DNA of 64,000 nt, from positions 1 through 64,000 of the forward strand of contig JAAPAO010000004.1 in assembly GCA_013115145.1 (NCBI GenBank), written 5' to 3'. The stretch comes from Perkinsus chesapeaki ATCC PRA-425. Its lineage: Eukaryota; Protista; Perkinsozoa. The translations under genes and the position numbers were made by a program. Positions 3,434-61,933 of this stretch are shown in pieces (positions within the stretch are counted from its first letter, which is position 1; the number at the start of each line of letters is the position of its first letter). Under the pieces are notes generated by a model. It ran no database searches, was not told the DNA's origin, and saw nothing but the letters and a program-made list of their open reading frames with translations.

Positions 3434-4642
3434 ATGGGAGTTGATGATGAGACTCCTCCAATTCTTCCTTCGGTCCACCCCACCGACCCGGTCCCTCCCA
3501 AGAGTTCAAGTTCTAAGGTAGAAGTTTCGAGGGTAGAAGGCGCCCCCGGCGACTCTAAGAAATCTGCTAACGATCCTAACTACATCGACCCGCATGAAGA
3601 CGTGGTCAACATGGTGAGAGCATATGCACCGTCTCGTGACATCGCCGATGAACTCATTAGAACTCTTGGTTTGAACGGTTTAACCTCGACTCACCTGCTC
3701 GGGTCGCTTTCGACGACATCTCTCGGTCGGGTCACTGGGAGCTTATCGGTCGCTGCAGCAGCCACGTTAGAGTCTGTTGTGGAAGAAATTGGGGCCGTCA
3801 TTCGCAAGAGGCGCAAGCTCCATGCCGAGGCCGACGCCCTGTCGCAACGATCTACGGTTCAGATTGAGGCCATAGTAAACCAAGCGGTGAAAAATTATCA
3901 CTCACCGTTGCCTCCCAATCTTTTTTATGGCATCTCAGCTTCGGTCATTTCCGCTATTAGTAATATCAAGAATGCCTGCTACGTTCCTTTCAAGGATATC
4001 ATGGAGAAGCCCGGCTTGGATGTGGAAGAAGCTCCTGACAGTTCAATTGGACCTCTATCCTCGACTTCTAGCACCACTCCGCCAAGAAAGAGTAAGTCTC
4101 CTGAATCAGTAGCTGATTGGTTTCAGTGCCGCTTTCGTTTCTCCCTTTTGATCGCTGGTACGATTGACCCTCTGGTTTTATCGCCGGTCGACGTGTTGGC
4201 CTACGGTTCGAGGATTATGAGTCTGGCCAAGTCTCTTCCTTTCTCTGCGGTCGTGGTATACGATGACAAGTACCGTCGCGGCCTAGCAGCAGTTGTGGCG
4301 GCTAACTCCCAGTTAACGTTGAGACAGTGCTTCCTTTCCGATGTTAATCCGACTCTGCTCGTCGAGGTGGCCAATCAATCTATCCGGACCTACAACAATA
4401 ATAACAACAAGCGCCACTTTGGTACCAATAACTCTGGTCATCATCCCCAGAAGTCCCAGGCCTGCAGGAAGTTCGCGATGGGCACTTGCACCTGGGGTGA
4501 TCGCTGCCGATATGTGCACGATACGGCCGGAAAGCCCGGTGGGCGTTCCACCGAGTCCTCGACGTCTGACCCAGCCCGGAGCGGTAAGCGTCAAGGGAAG
4601 CCCCCTGCCAAGTCCACTACCTCCGAAGAAGGTAAGACTTGA
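3434..4642 (+). CDS. Gag-like ORF1 with a CCCH zinc finger
   Basis: First plausible ATG at 3434 (MGVDDE). C-terminal CRKFAMGTCTWGDRCRYVH is C-x7-C-x5-C-x3-H. Lies upstream of RT. Confidence 0.75.
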   Translation: MGVDDETPPILPSVHPTDPVPPKSSSSKVEVSRVEGAPGDSKKSANDPNYIDPHEDVVNMVRAYAPSRDIADELIRTLGLNGLTSTHLLGSLSTTSLGRVTGSLSVAAAATLESVVEEIGAVIRKRRKLHAEADALSQRSTVQIEAIVNQAVKNYHSPLPPNLFYGISASVISAISNIKNACYVPFKDIMEKPGLDVEEAPDSSIGPLSSTSSTTPPRKSKSPESVADWFQCRFRFSLLIAGTIDPLVLSPVDVLAYGSRIMSLAKSLPFSAVVVYDDKYRRGLAAVVAANSQLTLRQCFLSDVNPTLLVEVANQSIRTYNNNNNKRHFGTNNSGHHPQKSQACRKFAMGTCTWGDRCRYVHDTAGKPGGRSTESSTSDPARSGKRQGKPPAKSTTSEEGKT

Positions 4643-6950: not shown

Positions 6951-8021
6951 TTGTTGAGTTACCAACCCTTAACTCGGGTTCCCAAGTGCTACCCGGCCTG
7001 GGCTCCTTCGAGTAACCCAAAAAGAGAGAGTGTGCGAGAACTGATAGCCGAGAAAGGACGTGACTCTTCGAGACTGTTGGCCGAAGAATTTGCGGCGACG
7101 GGCTTGGCGCAGAACACGAATGAGCTTTACGACCGGACCGTCCAGTTCTACGCGCAAATGGTCGGGACACCGTGCTTCCCACTGACCGTTTCTGACTTGC
7201 AGTTATTCATATGGGCCTTAACCAAATGTGGCTATGCTTATAATACGATAAAGACTTATGTGTCTGGGCTGAGGTCTAGGAATAAGTCGCGTGGTTATGA
7301 CTTATCAGTCAGTGAGTCGTTCAGATTGTCACACGTTCTCCGCGCGGCAGAGAAGGCATGCAGTTCAACACCCACGAAACAGATGCTGCCTCTGAATAAG
7401 ATGGATATCTTCAAGATTTTCCGTCGCTGGCACCCAAGGCGTGACCTTTCGTCGGCCGCAATTCTGATTGGTATCTTCGGCTTGTTAAGAGCGGACGAGA
7501 TTCTGGCGCTCGAGTGGGATGATATATCTATACGGTGTTCTCCAGCAGGTGCTGTTTCTCCCTGCATCATGGAGGTTAAGATAAGACGAAGCAAAACCGA
7601 TCAGGTAGCAGCTGGGCAGTCGGTGTATATTGCCTGCACGTCTCGGGTTATGGCCTCCCTTCCAGAAGGGATTGGGGAAGGAGCTACCTGCGACCTTTGT
7701 CCTCTCCACGTCCTCTGGGACCGGAAACCAACAGATGGGACGGGGGGAAAGATTTTCCCGCTCTATTACCAGGACCTCTTGAGAACCATTCGAACCCGCC
7801 TGGGCCCAGTTGTTGGCTACGATGTGGTTGACGAGTTCGGCACCCATACCCTTCGACGCACTGGTGCCCAGCTTCTCCATCAGGCTTTGCCGGCAGAGTC
7901 TCCTGTACTGATGCGAGCCGGTCGTTGGAAGTCGCTATCAGTGCTAGAGTACCTCCACGAGAGTTCGGAGGTGAAAGCAAAGTTCGCTACTTGCTATATG
8001 CTAACCGGTAGACTCGAGTAG
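6951..8021 (+). CDS. Tyrosine recombinase
   Basis: Catalytic set present: FGLLRADE (R), RRSKTDQ (K), THTLRRTG (HxxR), GRWKS (W), VLEYL (Y). Confidence 0.9.
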   Translation: MLSYQPLTRVPKCYPAWAPSSNPKRESVRELIAEKGRDSSRLLAEEFAATGLAQNTNELYDRTVQFYAQMVGTPCFPLTVSDLQLFIWALTKCGYAYNTIKTYVSGLRSRNKSRGYDLSVSESFRLSHVLRAAEKACSSTPTKQMLPLNKMDIFKIFRRWHPRRDLSSAAILIGIFGLLRADEILALEWDDISIRCSPAGAVSPCIMEVKIRRSKTDQVAAGQSVYIACTSRVMASLPEGIGEGATCDLCPLHVLWDRKPTDGTGGKIFPLYYQDLLRTIRTRLGPVVGYDVVDEFGTHTLRRTGAQLLHQALPAESPVLMRAGRWKSLSVLEYLHESSEVKAKFATCYMLTGRLE

Positions 8022-54233: not shown

Positions 54234-55540
54234 ATGAGTGCTCCACGTCGATATATCGACATCGCCGTCAACTTGACTGATGGCATGTTCCAAGGTGTTT
54301 ATTATGGTGGAAGTCAAAAGCATCCACCCGATGAAGAGGCAGTGGTAGGTGTTGAGGTAGCCATGGTCTTACTAATGTTTTCTTAGATTGAGAGAGCCCA
54401 TCTCGGCGGGTGTAGTAAGATGCTTGTATGTGGTGGAAGTCTGAATGATTCCGTTAAGGCAATTGAGCTATGCAAGAGGCTCGATCCTAAAGGCGAAAAA
54501 CTGTACACGCACTGTGGAGGTTTTCGACGACGGTCGGCTGCTTAGGTTTTGTACCGTTGGGGTGCATCCAACAAGAGTCGGGGAGTTTGAGGGAGAGGGG
54601 ACATCTCCCGAGGAACACCTGAATGCATTACGGGCATTGGTAGCTGACAACTTGGACAGAGTGGCGGCCATTGGTGAGATGGGCCTCGATAAAGAAAGGA
54701 CAGAATTCTGCGACTATGATACGCAAGTGAAGTAAGCAGTCCTGATGTTAGGGATTGCGTAACTGTTCTCCGATCAGGTATTTTGAGCTTCAACTGCAGC
54801 TTGTGGAGGAGTTTCGTCTCCCGATGTTTTTGCACATGAGGGAAGCTGGTGATGACTTTTGTAAGTTGATGACGGAATGAAACTTTGTAGTTCGATGATT
54901 GTGTTAGATCGAATTTTAAAAGAGAACGAGAGGAAGTGGTGTGAAGTCGGTGGAGTAGCTCACAGTTTTACTGGCTCTCAAGAGGAGATGAAGCTCATTA
55001 CATCACTTGGGCTGTGCATAGGTGAAGAACACTTAGCAGACTCGGTCGGCAGTAACTTTGTTATTTACTATATTCAGACATGCTATATGTCCAATGACTG
55101 TTTCCCAGTCAGGTTTGAATGGATGCAGTTTGCGCACTGTAGAGAGCCTTGAGAGAGTGGTGCCACACATACCGATTGATAAGATAATGTTCGAAACAGA
55201 TTCCCCGTAAGACAACACAAATGAGCTAACACTGAGGGTCCATAAGATACTGTGACATACGACAGTCACATCCAAGCTATAAGTATCTAGCAAGCAAGCA
55301 AGATTGGTGGTACCACGGTGAAGTGGTGAAAAAAGCCGAGAAGTGGGAGGAGGGTAAAATGGTAAGTACTTGAACGATGGAAGATACGATAGTTTAATGT
55401 CTCAGGTTAAGAGTCGTAATGAGCCTTGCTTGGTGGGGCAAGTGGCGGCAGTCGTGGCATCGGTCCATCCAGCTGGTGATGAAGTCGTTGATGCTGCTTA
55501 TAATAATACTTTACGTGTATTTACCAAAATGAAAAAATAG
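54234..55540 (+). CDS. TATDN1: TatD-family DNase (TATDN1-like), multi-exon
   Basis: YIDIAVNLTDGMFQG.Y, TVGVHPTR, AIGEMGLD, LPMFLHMR, GVAHSFTG, MFETDSP, RNEPC. Confidence 0.92.
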
Positions 55541-55671: not shown

Positions 55672-58600
55672 ATGTCCCTCCCCCAGTCCCCCGGATCCCT
55701 CCATGCTATAGTAGAGCAGTTGGCCAAAGACCACTCCGATAGGCCGGCCGTCGACGGATTAGATGGTGATCCGTGGTCGTACAACAAGCTCTATGCTAGC
55801 TCCCTGAGAATGGCATCGGTTCTCCGCAGTCGGCTTGCTGGCTGTACCAAAGCTACCCAAGCTGGCTACTCCCTATCTATTGGTCTGTGTGCTCCTAGAG
55901 GCCCCCGATGGGTAGCAGTGTGTGTGGCGGCATCGATGCTTGGAGTACCATTTGTGCCGATGGTTCAAGATCTTCACCCAAATACGAAGAGTGAAGCTGA
56001 GGCGAAGAAGATCAGAGATACCACTGATGACCGTAACCGTGCCATAATGCGGGACATACAGCCAATGGTGGTGGTGGTAGATGATGCCACCACCCCCAAG
56101 GAGACGATTAAGTTGGTTACCTCCTTCGGACAGTGTACGGTCGTCGATATTAATTCGTTGCTTACTGAAGCGACGTGTTCCTTTTCCAAAGCCGTCGAGC
56201 CCCTCCAACCAGTTCAAAGGGAGTCCCCTCTGTGGTGAGTTTTTCCCTCTTTTGTGAGCCATGATCGTTTGTCTTTCTCAGTCTCCTTTTCACCGGTGGG
56301 ACCACGAAGGCTTCTAAGTGCGCGGTAGTTTCCCAAGGCATGCTAGCCCACGAGTTCAAGTCCTACCCGCTCATCGTACCCGATTCCCAACGAGGCATTC
56401 TAATGGGTGGCGACGGCCCTCGAGTTCTCCAGCAATCATCCTCCTACTGGGGGGCTACCTGCATTGGTCAGCTATCGCTCAGTTTGGCCCTTCAAGGGTG
56501 TCTGGTCATGGTGGACGTATCCTCTCAGAGGTCGTTAAGTGTCGGTATATCCTCGACTATGGACCTTCGCTCGATGATCACCAACTTTGCTATCAACGTG
56601 GTTGGTGCTGTACCGAGTCAATTAGCCGCTACGACTTTGGATGATGATGTCGCTAAGAGTATGCTGGCTGTGTTTACGTGGGGAGAGAAGCTCACGACCA
56701 CTATCGGGGACGAATGGAGCTCGAAGGTGAGGCCTCACTTTTTGGAGAGAAATATGACGCGTCCCGGACTCGAACCCGAGTGGCAGTTTCGAAACGGTCA
56801 CACCACGGGAGCCACGCGGCAACAACACCGACGTCATTCGGATCTCTTCGTCTCTTCCCTTTTGTCATGATGAATCTCTTCTTCCATAGATACCTATCGT
56901 CATCGAGCTGCTTGTTGCCACCGAGTACTGGCTTAGCATGTATCGATTAGTCACTCCCTATCCGACTGCTGGACCTGTCTTCACTGTTGTACCGGGTGTC
57001 CGAGTAACAACACTATCAGAGGATGAAGCAACGACTGATATCACCAAGGGAGAGCTCATCTTGGCCGGCCCAAGTGTCACGGAGACGGGCTATGTTGAGC
57101 AGGCGGAGAACGAATGCCTATTTGTTAAAGTCGATGATCGTAGATTCTTCCGCACCAATGATCTTATAGAGGTCATTGAATGGCGTGCCGAATCCGAGGG
57201 ATGTGCCGAGACGCTAAGGTGAGGGCTGTATGCTCTGCACGGTCTCGGATTTCAGCATTGCCAGATATCTCGGGCGAAGCGACATGTTCATAAAACTGGG
57301 AGGACAATGGGTCGACTTGGAAGTCCTCCAGGAGAAGATATCAACATTGCCGTGTGTAAAGGAGGTTGTCCTACTACAACAACAACCGAAGGTGTTGGAG
57401 GCTGCTAGAGGCACGGAGGGAACCCTAGGGGGGTTGAAGTTGGAAGATAATACAGAGCAGCCCTCCGTCCATGCCTTTATCATAATGAAGTAGTCTGAGT
57501 CTTTGTCAACAGTACCACATGTACCCTCTTCCCTCAGACCCTTCCGAATGGCCCCCATGGCTGAAGTCCAGCGTCTCCTACCCAGTGGTAATGTTGTACA
57601 AGTCCACTGGCTTGCATTACAGACTCTTCCACGCCACACTGCAACCGGCAAAGTCGATCGTCGTGCTCTCCTGGGTATGGTATCTGACGGGGATCTGCCT
57701 TCACCATCTGATGTTGAGCTAAAGCGATGCCGAGGCTACCTGGCGAGATGGTCCCTGATCACCGCAATCATCGCTGTCATCCACTACTTGGTTCTCGGCC
57801 TGTCGGGTATGTTCCTCGCCGCCCATTTCAACATTACCTATTGGACTCTAAAGATGGTCCATGGTAACATCTGGCGAATCCTCGAACACGCTAAGCCTCC
57901 CTATATCGCCGATGAGCCCGGTTTACGTTGGGTGCTTCGCTCCGTCCTCGACTGGTCATTTTCGGTTGTAAGGATGATAGCCAGTCAACTGAAGGATTTG
58001 GAGATCTCGATCAAATCGCGTGCGTGCAGTATTGGTGGCATCTTGGTCAGCTTCTCCTTCACTTTGATGCTTACACTAGCAATGGGTCTCCTATCAGATT
58101 CAGTGGTTTGGTCAGTAGCCTGGCAGAGCGCTATCTTAGTTACTTCTGGTTTGTTATTGGACAGCGCCTTTCCGCCGCTTGATGGGCCCTACAGGAGCCA
58201 GCCGTTGTGGTATAGAGCTTGCCATGGTCTAGTGCTGGTTGTTCAGTTCAATCTTTTATGGTGGTTGTCTATCGGGCGGAGTATTGAAAAAGATTCCGGC
58301 AAAGTAGCGGAGTGGACCAGAGATCCTGGAGCACCATGGTGGATGTCATCATGGCTTAGGGACTGCTCCCTCGACATGGACCAGACTACTAGCGCCCTTC
58401 GAGGATACAGCCTACAGAAGACCGATGCCCAAGAGGAGGACTTCCTAATGGACAGTGTGAGTGGTGAAGCTGCCCAGTTTGGTCATTCCAATCCCCTTGA
58501 TTAGGTATTCGTATCACCTCGAGACCTCCGTCATTGTCGTGATCATGATGAAGTTTTTGAGGGCATGTTTGATCAACGAAGTGGATGGACTACAACTGCT

Positions 58601-60906
58601 GATAAGGCCGATGATGGCTACCAGGAATCCTACTATTACAGCTGGATGGACACCCAGCAGCCCACAGATGGCCGGCGTCATCGTGGTCTCCCACCTACTG
58701 TACAGATAACAAACAAAGAGTGGTCAGAGATGAGGAAAGATGCCGTTGATAATATTGAAAGGTGGTTGCAAGAGGGCGAGCTGGAGACCTTCGATGAGGA
58801 TGTTATTGACGGAGAGAGCTACCATATGGCCAAGGAGAACCTGGGGTATGAGGAGAGAAGACACCTTGGCGGTACAGCTCAGTCTACACCAATGGCACAA
58901 CAACAGCTAGAGGTGTCAGAAACCTCTACAACGCCAACGCTTGGTGCTAGAGACGACGATGATGATTCGAGTACTGATAGTGGTGATGATGAATGGTATG
59001 TGAGCGGCAATGATGCTCCAACTTCTACTGTGACGGACGAGATCGAGGCGCCGGCGTTGAAGAGGTCGAAGGTTGGCGGTGGCACTGAGTCACTGGCGCA
59101 GAGGCTGGCACTGCTGGTGGAGAAGCAATTGTCCTATCCGATCGATGACTATGACGCCGAGGTTGTGTCCAGCATCGACTCCTTAGGGGCAGTTCAGCTA
59201 GCACACAGTATAAGAACTGAGTTAAGGCTTACGGGGTTATTATCGGTTGGTGATGTCCTCAAGTGTCGTACTATCAATGACTTGGTCGCAGTAGTGGACA
59301 GTAAGAGTAAGACCGTAGAGGATACCATTGGCAGCAAGAGTGATGATATGTCGAGCGATTCCTTCACTAGACTCTCTAAGGTCCTGGATGCACTCACTGG
59401 AGTTGATCCCAGAGGTCATGGTCCAAAGTCAGCAGCTGGGTTACCTGTACAAGTGTGGGGTTGGCAAGGAGTCTGTGCTTGGATGCTAGAATGGACAAAA
59501 GGCAACGAAGATGATGATGATGACATTGATCTCGTAGCTTTACAGATGGCCGTTCAAGCGGTGGTGGCTCGTCAGGCGTCTATGAGGGTTGTTACTGATG
59601 TTGGTATCGGCTACTTCACTTTCATGAATGAGTGCTTGTCTGTCCAGGGATTGGTCAAGTACATGGCCCTGACCAGAGGGGGTCGATGGCTCTCTTGGAT
59701 TGCTGATGTTGCCTACGGTATTGGTCGGTGGGTCCTGTGGCCTCTATGGGGAAGGATACACCTAAGCTCTGCAGTCGAAGGTCGACCTGGAGCTGTCAGA
59801 GTTCGTGAATTCACTTCTCGTGATACCTTGAGGCGTTGGATCCAAAGCGAGAAGAGGCAGAACTTCCACTCCCCTTTGGCCATGGATATTGTTCTATTGG
59901 ATGAGAGCTATGATGGTTGTGGTCCTGTTAGAACCTTCGTCCGAGTCTTCGTCACCCATGCCTTCTCAGATGGGTTCAGTGTGGTCCCTCTCCTTAGTGA
60001 TCTCAACGAGGCCTACGCCAGTGCTAAGAGAGGTCGGCATAGAGGTCCTCGGCATCGCTTGCTACCTCCCCTCCGAACGTCTGGTCCACAAGTCCAAAGC
60101 GGCAGACTAAGGCATACCCTATTCGATAGAGCACGTGATGTTCATGGTGACACGCTGTATCCATGCTACACTATCGACCACACCACAGTGTCACACTACT
60201 CAAATGGTTTCGGCCACTGTGTGAAGTTGCTACCATCTGTCCACCTAACTCTGCACAGTATCAGTCGTAAGCTTGGTGCTCCAGTGGATGTTGTGATGCT
60301 TGCGGCTATTGTATTGGCATCAGTTCGAGAGAGGGGATGGCGTAAGGTGGCCAAGGCTACACTTGTGGTGCCGTTAAGGGATGGTCCCAGTGAGCATCAA
60401 CTTGTTGGGTTATTCGCTGACCTGAGGAATGTTGATATCCCTTTGGAAGACATCATAGGTGATGATGATGCAAGGAAGCCTTGTGCCAGCAGTGTCCTTA
60501 ACTTTGTAAGTTCGTCTTCTGTCTGATGTGTTTGATTTATTAACCCTCCTTCCGTTAGGTTTTGACACTCCGTCATATGATTAAGTTTCGACGATGGACG
60601 ATACCGACGCCACTGAGCAGTTGTGAGAGGATGTTGGTCAACCTTCTTCCCGCCCAGTTCCCCTCTGGTGGCGAAGGGCGCTTTGAGCAGAATTTGCATG
60701 TCTCCCCGCTGCCTCAAGGGAGCTCAGTAACAGCCACAAGAGCAATGGAGATTGCTTGTGATCAAACCAGTCGAGATTCTTGGGCCCTCCGTTTTAAATG
60801 CCGCGAGCCTGATTATTCTCGGGAAGATCTGTGCAATTGGTTGGAATATTTTCAGGGTGCCATTAGGGACATGGTGGTTGACCCTATGAGACCCTTATAT
60901 CATTGA
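55672..60906 (+). CDS. Single-module NRPS-like protein: A domain, membrane segment, acidic linker, T (PCP) domain, C domain
   Basis: A: LLFTGGTTKASK, GELILAGP, FRTND, YLGRSD..IK.GGQ, TGKVDRRAL. T: IDSLGAVQL. C: THAFSDG, LVGLFAD. In-frame GT-AG introns at 56235-56281, 56727-56889, 57490-57537 and 58457-58504, plus two more near 57220-57265 and 60506-60558. Confidence 0.82.
56755..56820 (-). pseudogene. 66-nt degenerate tRNA-like element, antisense in an NRPS intron
   Basis: GCCGCGT...ACGCGTC-A pairs 6 of 7 as an acceptor stem; A-box-like TGGCTCCCGTGG; B-box GGTTCGAGTCC. Confidence 0.6.
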
Positions 60907-61042
60907 TAACGTCGTCTAGCTTGTTTAATGCGTCGTGCATTAGTAATTATGATAGTTGTCTTTAAATTGCCTTTTCTATTACCCCACTGCTCTTGTGTAT
61001 TGTACACATTCGGGAATGTATTTTGTCAGGTATTTTCACACA

Positions 61043-61933
61043 ATGCTTCCTAAGAAGTGTTCTATTATGATCGCCAGAGGCTTCCATTACAGTGCCAGTG
61101 GGTTCCTCATATCAGTTGGAGGCTTCACTGCTATATTATCCCTCTACCTTCTATCACAAAGTATCGGTCATCCCCTTGGTTCATCTATGGGTCTCTGCTT
61201 TGGTCTACTGTTCTGTGCCGTAGCCATCGCGGGTCTGTTCGTAACTATCAAACGGAATACTTGGTATCTGTCACTACTACTTCTATTGCAAGCTATTGGT
61301 TATGTTTGCTTCTTCGCAGCTGCTGTGACAATGTCAGTATTCATGCCAACACTCACCGGTATGGATGACTATAGTATGCCAGAACTCAATGGACTATCCG
61401 GACAAGATGGAAGCTTCTACCGCGGCACTCGAACGATCTTCCAATACATCTACAAGCATGCTCAGTGCATTGGCGGCGTCTGCTCATCCCGAGATAACGT
61501 GAGCTCATGTACGACGGTTAAATGCAGCTCATCAAAGGATCTCACGAAGACTGTCAATGACCTACTGAACCGCCGTTGGATCGGTCCCGGCTCCGGGAGC
61601 TCTATGAGCTACTGTGCTGGCTCGGCTCTTGATGATCAAGCTGTGGACAATGTGATAGCCTCATCGGCTACTACATGGTGTGGATGTAGCATGGAAGTGT
61701 TCCGATATATGAAACTGTGGTCCCCTTGGATCCTTGCTGTCCTATGGGTAACCGTCTTCTTTATCTCCATAGTTGCCGCTACTACTCTCAAGGCACTATT
61801 CTTGAAGAAGTTCCACTCCTGGAGGTCTGCTATCAGAAGTGTCGGCCGGAGTGTGGGGCGTAGTGTTGCTCGTAGTAGTGACAGCGCTTCGGTATCCCCA
61901 CCTCCCGCAGATGTGGAGTTTGTTAGGCTGTAA
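61043..61933 (+). CDS. Tetraspanin-like protein, intronless
   Basis: Three N-terminal hydrophobic helices, a Cys-rich large loop (CIGGVC...C...C...C...WC) and a fourth helix. Confidence 0.7.
   Translation: MLPKKCSIMIARGFHYSASGFLISVGGFTAILSLYLLSQSIGHPLGSSMGLCFGLLFCAVAIAGLFVTIKRNTWYLSLLLLLQAIGYVCFFAAAVTMSVFMPTLTGMDDYSMPELNGLSGQDGSFYRGTRTIFQYIYKHAQCIGGVCSSRDNVSSCTTVKCSSSKDLTKTVNDLLNRRWIGPGSGSSMSYCAGSALDDQAVDNVIASSATTWCGCSMEVFRYMKLWSPWILAVLWVTVFFISIVAATTLKALFLKKFHSWRSAIRSVGRSVGRSVARSSDSASVSPPPADVEFVRL

Follow-up and report, generated by a model that had tools for sequence, protein, structure and literature searches.

What kind of enzyme results when a block of hydrophobic helices lies between the adenylation and carrier domains of a nonribosomal peptide synthetase (NRPS)? 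The question is raised by a gene at 55672-60906 on the + strand of a 64,000-nt stretch of Perkinsus chesapeaki ATCC PRA-425 DNA (contig JAAPAO010000004.1, positions 1 to 64,000), which is called the window here and whose numbering is used unless another locus is named. A first-pass annotation, made from the letters of this DNA, had proposed a membrane-anchored, single-module NRPS-like protein with the order adenylation (A), transmembrane (TM), carrier (T) and condensation (C). We found all four parts in exactly this order. The locus is probably a single gene, encoding a membrane-anchored, single-module NRPS-like enzyme of 1612 residues that is composed of an A domain, a helical membrane domain, an acidic tether, a T domain and a C domain.

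Gene structure and family

In-frame GT-AG introns were enumerated junction by junction between the open segments, and each junction yielded one short intron with a consensus-like donor. The seven exons on the + strand join in frame to 4839 nt, corresponding to 1612 aa and a stop codon, close to the ~1,600 aa anticipated in the first-pass annotation.

55672-56234, + strand: exon 1, start codon and N-terminal A domain, colinear with residues 8-184 of full-length relatives
56282-56726, + strand: exon 2, A-domain core, 40% identity to relatives
56727-56889, + strand: intron 2, 163 nt, GTGAGG...TAG, the sole long intron; junction EWSSK/IPIVI in frame
56890-57218, + strand: exon 3, A5, A6 and A7 motifs
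57256-57489, + strand: exon 4, A8 hinge motif and beginning of the small C-terminal A subdomain
57538-58456, + strand: exon 5, A-domain end with the A10 lysine, then the membrane domain and the beginning of the linker
58505-60505, + strand: exon 6, acidic linker, carrier domain and major part of the C domain
60559-60906, + strand: exon 7, C-terminal part of the C domain and stop, aligning to the C-terminal ends of full-length relatives

The introns have lengths of 47, 163, 37 (alternatively 46), 48, 48, and 53 nt, in that order. Of their donors, GTAGTC at 57490 (intron 4) is the weakest. The end of exon 4 at this donor is nevertheless fixed, because a stop codon follows at 57491-57493 and both flanking exons reproduce the family consensus AFVxL...RxxLP...LPRxxxTGKVDR, with HAFIIM of exon 4 fitting AFVxL. 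The exon 6/7 junction, SVLNF/VLTLRH, is identical in the gene models of P. olseni and P. marinus, the two species with the closest proteins (74% and 73% identity, respectively), and exon 7 is 82% identical to P. marinus.

Single exons or natural database proteins served as queries in the sequence searches. HMMER searching with a T-C profile retrieved 1106 proteins at E≤1e-3, of which 342 had E≤1e-10 and 49 had E≤1e-30; many of the retrieved proteins are 1200-1800 residues long and carry T-C at the C-terminus. All named members come from Perkinsus or dinoflagellates (Effrenium, Polarella, Prorocentrum, Polykrikos, Gymnodinium) and bear generic names only ("AMP-dependent synthetase/ligase domain-containing", "Carrier domain-containing"); the hosts among the nameable matches are Perkinsus, dinoflagellates, and unidentified eukaryotes only. 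Nearest to the window gene stands a clade (P0004-P0012) of uninterrupted open reading frames (ORFs); their contigs, from freshwater metagenomes, are compact and poor in introns, and the neighbour genes are eukaryotic (Per1, WLM, enolase). An ESM Atlas search with P0004 returned generic A-T-C look-alikes only.

The P. chesapeaki genome itself holds a second copy with the same architecture, on contig C1090 (locus L004:2635-7474, - strand). Its AMP-binding exons lie at L004:6408-7474, and an uninterrupted 1141-aa ORF contains the A-domain end, an aromatic-rich insert, a T domain (GGMTSL), and a C domain (RHAWSDA). The duplication looks old because this copy groups with a different clade than the window gene. 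A third site, at G000:C2628:21496-22047 (- strand), matched the T-C profile weakly (E 3.6e-5 over profile positions 66-257); it lies within an open frame of 308 aa and could represent either a fragment or a third, distant member. Judged from sequence, the A-insert-T-C architecture is a family trait and not the oddity of a single gene.

The adenylation domain and its substrate pocket

Pfam AMP-binding matched exon 1 (E 1.5e-11, profile positions 2-143) and exon 2 (E 2e-4, positions 167-306) at consecutive positions of the profile, and the core motifs A3-A10 of an ANL-superfamily A domain, including the A10 lysine, are all present.

55774-55794, + strand: A1-like WSYNKLY, exon 1
56289-56318, + strand: A3 P-loop FTGGTTKASK, exon 2
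56445-56459, + strand: YWGAT, exon 2, with W in place of Asp235 of PheA
56905-56937, + strand: A5 ELLVATEYWLS, exon 3 (family consensus ELLISTEYWL)
57049-57078, + strand: A6 GELILAGPSV, exon 3 (family consensus GELxxxGP)
57145-57165, + strand: A7 FFRTNDL, exon 3 (family consensus FRTxDL)
57272-57304, + strand: A8 hinge GRSDMFIKLGG, exon 4
57644-57664, + strand: A10 TGKVDRR, exon 5

The first-pass annotation had noticed a deviant P-loop and a retained A10 lysine. Both observations hold: the P-loop deviation is a family hallmark (consensus YTGGTTxASKC), and the A10 lysine is found in all 50 relatives.

When a family profile was compared with solved structures, NRPS modules scored best (8xjz, 3e-82; LgrA, 2e-71; three matched stretches each), whereas coenzyme A (CoA) ligases reached ~1e-31. 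For four relatives the best NCBIfam model was TIGR01733 (AA-adenyl-dom), at 84-100 bits against a curated cut-off of 317, which none of them reached; exon 2 of the window gene alone did not match it, and no specific NCBIfam name was obtained. An acyl-CoA synthetase or fatty acyl-AMP ligase was considered and rejected, since NRPS modules score far above CoA ligases and the carrier is covalently attached. Searched alone against PDB sequences, exons 1 and 2 had no match and exon 3 gave only weak matches to DltA (E 0.043). Single-exon pieces are too divergent and too short for such searches, so profiles and folds were needed.

The pocket was read at the ten specificity positions through an alignment of the relative P0007 to PheA (1amu). 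In the window gene these positions are W, G, I, G, F, W, L, L, S, and K; apart from YWGAT, the pocket residues of exon 2 lie within VVGAVPS and VFTWGE. Among 50 relatives, position 235 is W in 49, 330 is L in 48, and 278 (G), 301 (W), 322 (L), and 517 (K) are the same in every one, while the remaining four positions vary conservatively. Thus, Asp235 is replaced by Trp both in the window gene and in nearly all of its relatives. According to a study of the fungal glycine betaine reductase ATRR, A domains without Asp235 usually activate non-amino acids such as aryl, keto, and hydroxy acids or betaine (bioRxiv 10.1101/559534). Because Trp takes the place of the amino-binding Asp235 throughout the family, an alpha-amino acid appears unlikely as the substrate of the window enzyme. 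The first-pass annotation had suggested an amide or lipo-amino-acid synthetase, and the second half of that suggestion is weakened if the amino acid is taken to be the activated partner. Moreover, a pocket that is nearly invariant in a highly divergent family suggests one common substrate across the family, which would not be an alpha-amino acid.

A membrane domain between adenylation and carrier domains

In canonical modules of the GrsA type, the A10 lysine and the carrier serine are separated by approximately 55 residues. In the window gene the distance is 494 residues, and in 50 full-length members of the family it is 235-619 residues (median 385), so the A and T domains are not adjacent. 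The insert comprises the following elements.

57749-58273, + strand: membrane domain with four strongly hydrophobic 19-mers, as follows
57749-57805, + strand: hydrophobic 19-mer, exon 5
58040-58096, + strand: hydrophobic 19-mer, exon 5
58103-58159, + strand: hydrophobic 19-mer, exon 5
58217-58273, + strand: hydrophobic 19-mer, exon 5
58505-59089, + strand: acidic linker, first part of exon 6, with DDDDDSSTDSGDDE at 58952-58993

The hydrophobic helices placed at about 57740-58270 in the first-pass annotation correspond to the four 19-mers, and the acidic linker that it described after them is likewise evident, with 44 D+E against 19 K+R in the first 195 residues of exon 6. The linker, which has no family match in Pfam, is probably disordered. 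Across the 50 relatives, at least two hydrophobic 19-mers lie in the insert in 47, at a density four times that of the rest of the protein. In addition, the insert is conserved across clades at ~20-25% identity, with a Trp preceding helix 1, the motif "LPY.WL", a pair of Pro and Gly, and the motif "R...WP..FW.G...W". In a full-length model of the relative P0026 (predicted local distance difference test score (pLDDT) 86.6), the insert region is helical at pLDDT 80-96. By these motifs, the insert reads as a conserved domain in its own right and more than a mere anchor.

Does this domain span the membrane? It might instead be a monotopic or amphipathic surface, a lipid-binding domain, a substrate channel, or the dimerisation domain of a soluble enzyme, and several observations would suit such a role: the insert of the paralogue is aromatic-rich and not aliphatic, with no Kyte-Doolittle TM segment and a score by the Wimley-White scale alone; conserved motifs such as R...WP..FW.G...W look interfacial; and the P0026 model contains one helix of 42 residues, too long for a single span. 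However, the four 19-mers of the window gene have Wimley-White octanol free energies of -7.6 to -10.8 kcal/mol, compared with -6.1 for the strongest segment in the other exons, and Kyte-Doolittle peaks of 1.58 to 2.16, both scales agreeing on the four segments. Peaks in the closest clade reach 2.1-2.7. Such hydropathy values are typical of true spans and lie far above those of the remainder of the protein. We therefore consider an insert that does not cross the membrane improbable, although it is the most serious competitor to the membrane-anchored reading. The first hydrophobic stretch, of 55 residues, may form a hairpin.

Part of the family has a Cys motif, CxxxxxxxxxWxCxxC, between the membrane and T domains (alignment A4), which is possibly metal-binding; it is absent from the window gene.

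One gene or two

The seven exons could also belong to two adjacent genes, one for a membrane-anchored stand-alone adenylating enzyme (exons 1-5) and one for a T-C protein (exons 6-7), acting in trans or independently. If intron 5 were left unspliced, the TAG at 58502-58504 would end an A-TM protein and the ATG at 58565 could start the T-C protein. Furthermore, one of two P. olseni assemblies divides the orthologue of the paralogue into proteins of 619 and 780 aa, and the P. marinus annotation contains fragments only. These observations count against a single gene. However, intron 5 has the consensus donor GTGAGT, a TAG acceptor, and a length of 48 nt typical of this gene, and its removal keeps the frame. 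In the other P. olseni assembly, the same orthologue is a single model of 1522 aa (KAF4671395.1). The fragmentation in P. marinus is explained by the misassembly of the orthologous locus (L005, GG673601.1:162461-183771), which is interrupted by three gaps of 100 N: exon 1 is duplicated (3500-3997 and 6998-7495), its first copy running directly into a piece of exon 7, and exon 1 and the C domain are present while the middle of the gene, including the membrane exon, is missing.

The strongest evidence for one gene comes from the relatives. By BLASTP, their uninterrupted ORFs of 1213-1282 aa are colinear with all seven exons: exon 1 as listed above, exon 2 with residues 170-325, exon 3 with 300-400, exon 4 with 392-474, exon 6 with 700-1120, and exon 7 with 1110-1240. 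The T-C profile also matches dinoflagellate Trinity transcripts of 1274-1491 aa (P0010, P0031, P0035), and in the P0010 transcript both the A and the T domain are found by Pfam. A, insert, T, and C thus lie within one ORF or one transcript in these relatives, which supports one gene; we infer that the seven exons form a single transcript in P. chesapeaki as well, and regard two genes as unlikely. P0152 was tried as a full-length orthologue of the window gene and rejected, as BLASTP showed it to be the orthologue of the C1090 paralogue.

The carrier and condensation domains

59090-59330, + strand: carrier (T, or peptidyl carrier protein, PCP) domain, exon 6, with the phosphopantetheine serine in IDSLG at 59174-59188
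59400-60505, + strand: major part of the C domain, with THAFSDG at 59954-59974 and the C5-like PLRDGPSEHQLVGLFADLR at 60371-60427

AlphaFold2 modelling of window positions 59090-60505, with a 58-sequence alignment, gave a mean pLDDT of 83.6 and a predicted template modelling score (pTM) of 0.83. A four-helix carrier fold stands at the N-terminus of the model and aligns with the PCPs of solved PCP-C didomains; the serine of IDSLG comes immediately before helix 31-45. The carrier motif IDSL of the first-pass annotation is therefore placed within a carrier fold, and its serine is kept by 51 relatives in a set of 58 and by all 50 in another. In the window gene, Pfam PP-binding scored 18.7 bits (E 0.002), and relatives exceeded the cut-off with 22-25 bits. 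The first-pass annotation had also proposed looking in the genome for a phosphopantetheinyl transferase (PPTase). A candidate was found as one exon-sized piece (PF01648 at G000:C3056:3225-3323; score 29.7 bits, cut-off 25).

For the C domain, exon 6 alone found only the C domain of TomB among PDB sequences (E 0.38). A five-sequence T-C profile matched a solved PCP-C didomain at E 3.5e-6, and its second matched stretch aligns vTHAFSDGlsvvPLlsDLneaY to cHHIAADEwsfaPLlrDLdtaY. Foldseek searching with the T-C model returned PCP-C didomains and C domains, with the TomA/TomB complex (5.6e-12) and TycC5-6 (8.5e-12) as the best of 132 matches at E≤1e-3. The model has the two lobes, resembling chloramphenicol acetyltransferase, that define the condensation fold. 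Hence, the first-pass assignment of a C domain that keeps the second His of HHxxxDG is upheld by fold and profile.

Is this domain catalytic? A non-catalytic C-like domain could serve for scaffolding or recruitment, like the X-domain of glycopeptide synthetases, with the acyl-thioester released or used elsewhere. But His290 and Asp294 (in THAFSDG) as well as Arg430 and Asp431 (in PLRDGP...VGLFADLR, the C5 region; model numbering) are invariant in the 58-sequence alignment, and the second His and Asp of HHxxxDG are invariant in alignments A3 and A4. Catalytic and C5-like residues kept in 58 and 50 divergent relatives would not be expected of a pure scaffold, and we give this possibility as little credit as that of two genes.

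The paralogue and the genomic neighbourhood

Directly downstream of the C1090 paralogue lies a gene resembling apolipoprotein N-acyltransferase (Lnt) (L004:922-2481, - strand; CN_hydrolase, E 1.5e-15, with a weak LNT_N match), which is unusual for a eukaryote and adjoins an A-TM-T-C gene. Directly upstream is an ORF with a FLYWCH zinc finger (L004:7575-8057, - strand, E 3e-11), which may be transposon-derived. In two species of the closest clade, the A-TM-T-C gene stands head to head with Per1, a glycosylphosphatidylinositol (GPI) lipid-remodelling gene, at a gap of 2-18 nt, followed by an aldehyde dehydrogenase gene.

L006:8856-9983, - strand: Per1, head-to-head pair
L007:8845-9999, - strand: Per1, head-to-head pair
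L008:4020-5174, - strand: Per1, head-to-head pair

This adjacency may be plain synteny between related compact genomes. In the window, the neighbours on the + strand are a multi-exon TatD-type hydrolase upstream (54445-55540) and a tetraspanin-like four-helix membrane protein downstream (60956-61933; 24.4 bits, under the Pfam cut-off). On the opposite strand of intron 2, a tRNA T-loop-like sequence (GGTTCGAGTCC; GGGTTCGAGTCC) was seen by eye; neither ARAGORN nor Rfam called a tRNA remnant there.

Proposed mechanism and implications

Several points weigh against the reading of the locus as a membrane-anchored A-TM-T-C enzyme. Pfam Condensation (PF00668) gave no match even at E≤10 in the window gene or its orthologues, and the best relative reached 26.5 bits against a gathering score of 30.6. 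PP-binding in the window gene falls short of the Pfam cut-off of 20.8 bits. The TM prediction was made with hydropathy scales only. By BLASTP, the first ~80 residues of exon 5 align to relatives, but beyond the A10 region the insert of the window gene could not be aligned; a word search with exon 5 was blank, which has little weight given the length window of the tool. Finally, the TatD and tetraspanin-like neighbours have no evident link to a synthetase function.

On the membrane-anchored reading, the A domain would adenylate a carboxylic acid, probably not an alpha-amino acid, in a pocket lined by W, F, W, L, and L. The acyl group would then be loaded as a thioester onto the phosphopantetheine arm of the serine in the DSL motif, and the C domain, with its catalytic His and Asp intact, would transfer it to an amine or hydroxyl acceptor. 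A free acceptor is proposed because no carrier follows the C domain. The membrane domain, starting ~30 residues past the A10 lysine, would hold the enzyme at the membrane. Considering that T must visit both A and C on one face, an even number of spans is expected, which would keep A and T-C on the same side, and the ~250-residue tether would allow T-C to move back and forth between A and the acceptor. Given its place at the membrane, the enzyme may use a membrane-bound acceptor, make a membrane-bound product, or serve in export.

A more specific and rather doubtful proposal is that the family, with its many dinoflagellate members and its two clear copies in Perkinsus, forms a lineage-specific class of membrane enzymes, in which one non-amino-acid carboxylate is put on different membrane-bound or secreted acceptors via divergent C domains. 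The near-invariant pocket W-G-x-G-F-W-L-L-x-K would fit a small cationic acid (betaine or a sulfonium acid) or another conserved metabolite. If this were true, the class would supply the "missing" condensation partners of many dinoflagellate A domains, and it might be one way in which lipids with modified head groups, whose genes are unassigned, are made.

A survey of dinoflagellates described many A domains without recognisable C domains. In the present family, A and T are followed by a genuine condensation fold whose catalytic residues are intact, and standard Pfam thresholds still miss it; therefore, part at least of this gap is a detection problem. The architecture also raises a mechanistic question: with the A domain anchored at the membrane and the C domain on a long tether, how does the carrier travel from one to the other? 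Since the pocket is invariant and without Asp, the substrate question can be tested directly in vitro. For finding the product, Perkinsus is far easier than dinoflagellates, being culturable and having only two clear copies. If essential, the enzyme could be of interest as a parasite-specific target, considering that its nameable matches are confined to the hosts given above.

Comparison with known systems

Neither an A-TM-T-C enzyme nor this family turned up in searches of the full-text literature, and the same holds for a conserved membrane domain within the A-T linker of any thiotemplate enzyme. The window gene represents an NRPS-like family that is divergent and lineage-specific and has a conserved membrane domain between A and T.

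Enzymes with a similar combination of parts are Pls, which makes epsilon-poly-L-lysine, and PosA, which makes delta-poly-L-ornithine. Both are integral-membrane NRPS-like proteins with one A domain, one T domain, and a free acceptor, and in both, T is followed by six TM helices arranged as three pairs, interleaved with three segments, each ~180 residues long, which have been modelled as beta-helices (PMC10522769). The contrast with the Pls-type layout drawn in the first-pass annotation is thus confirmed: in the window gene the helices separate A from T, and the protein ends in one classical C fold in place of three non-classical "C" segments. The substrate pockets differ as well. A Pls-type synthetase polymerising a diamino acid at the membrane shares the single A-T unit and the membrane helices with the window gene, but it is very improbable, as here the helices precede T, two hydropathy scales found no strong hydrophobic segment after T, and the Asp that an amino-acid substrate requires is missing from the pocket.

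The fungal TmpL comprises an A domain, six TM helices, and a flavin adenine dinucleotide (FAD)/NAD(P)-binding domain, and its TM part targets the protein to an organelle membrane (PMC2766074). Like the window gene, it has a eukaryotic NRPS-type A domain directly before TM helices. It differs from the window gene in having a flavin reductase-like domain at its end and neither T nor C. The window gene has both T and C, Pfam found no flavin/NAD domain in it, and no sequence relationship was found between the two.

With respect to the pocket, a comparable NRPS-like enzyme is ATRR, whose Asp-less, aromatic pocket binds a non-alpha-amino acid by cation-pi interaction (bioRxiv 10.1101/559534). The loss of Asp235 and the aromatic pocket residues are shared with the window gene and are taken as a lead only. 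ATRR differs in being soluble, in its A-T-R-R order, and in having the acidic E304 in the pocket, the equivalent of which was not identified in the window gene.

In domain content and fold, the counterpart is AmbB (T-C structure 7x0f), a bacterial single-module A-T-C enzyme, and the PCP-C didomains of TycC, LgrA, and the fuscachelin synthetase are the closest known T-C relatives. The insert is absent from AmbB-type enzymes. Compared with bacterial A-T-C enzymes, the window gene is set apart by its 494-residue insert, its pocket without Asp235, its Condensation and TIGR01733 scores below cut-off, and its eukaryotic lineage.

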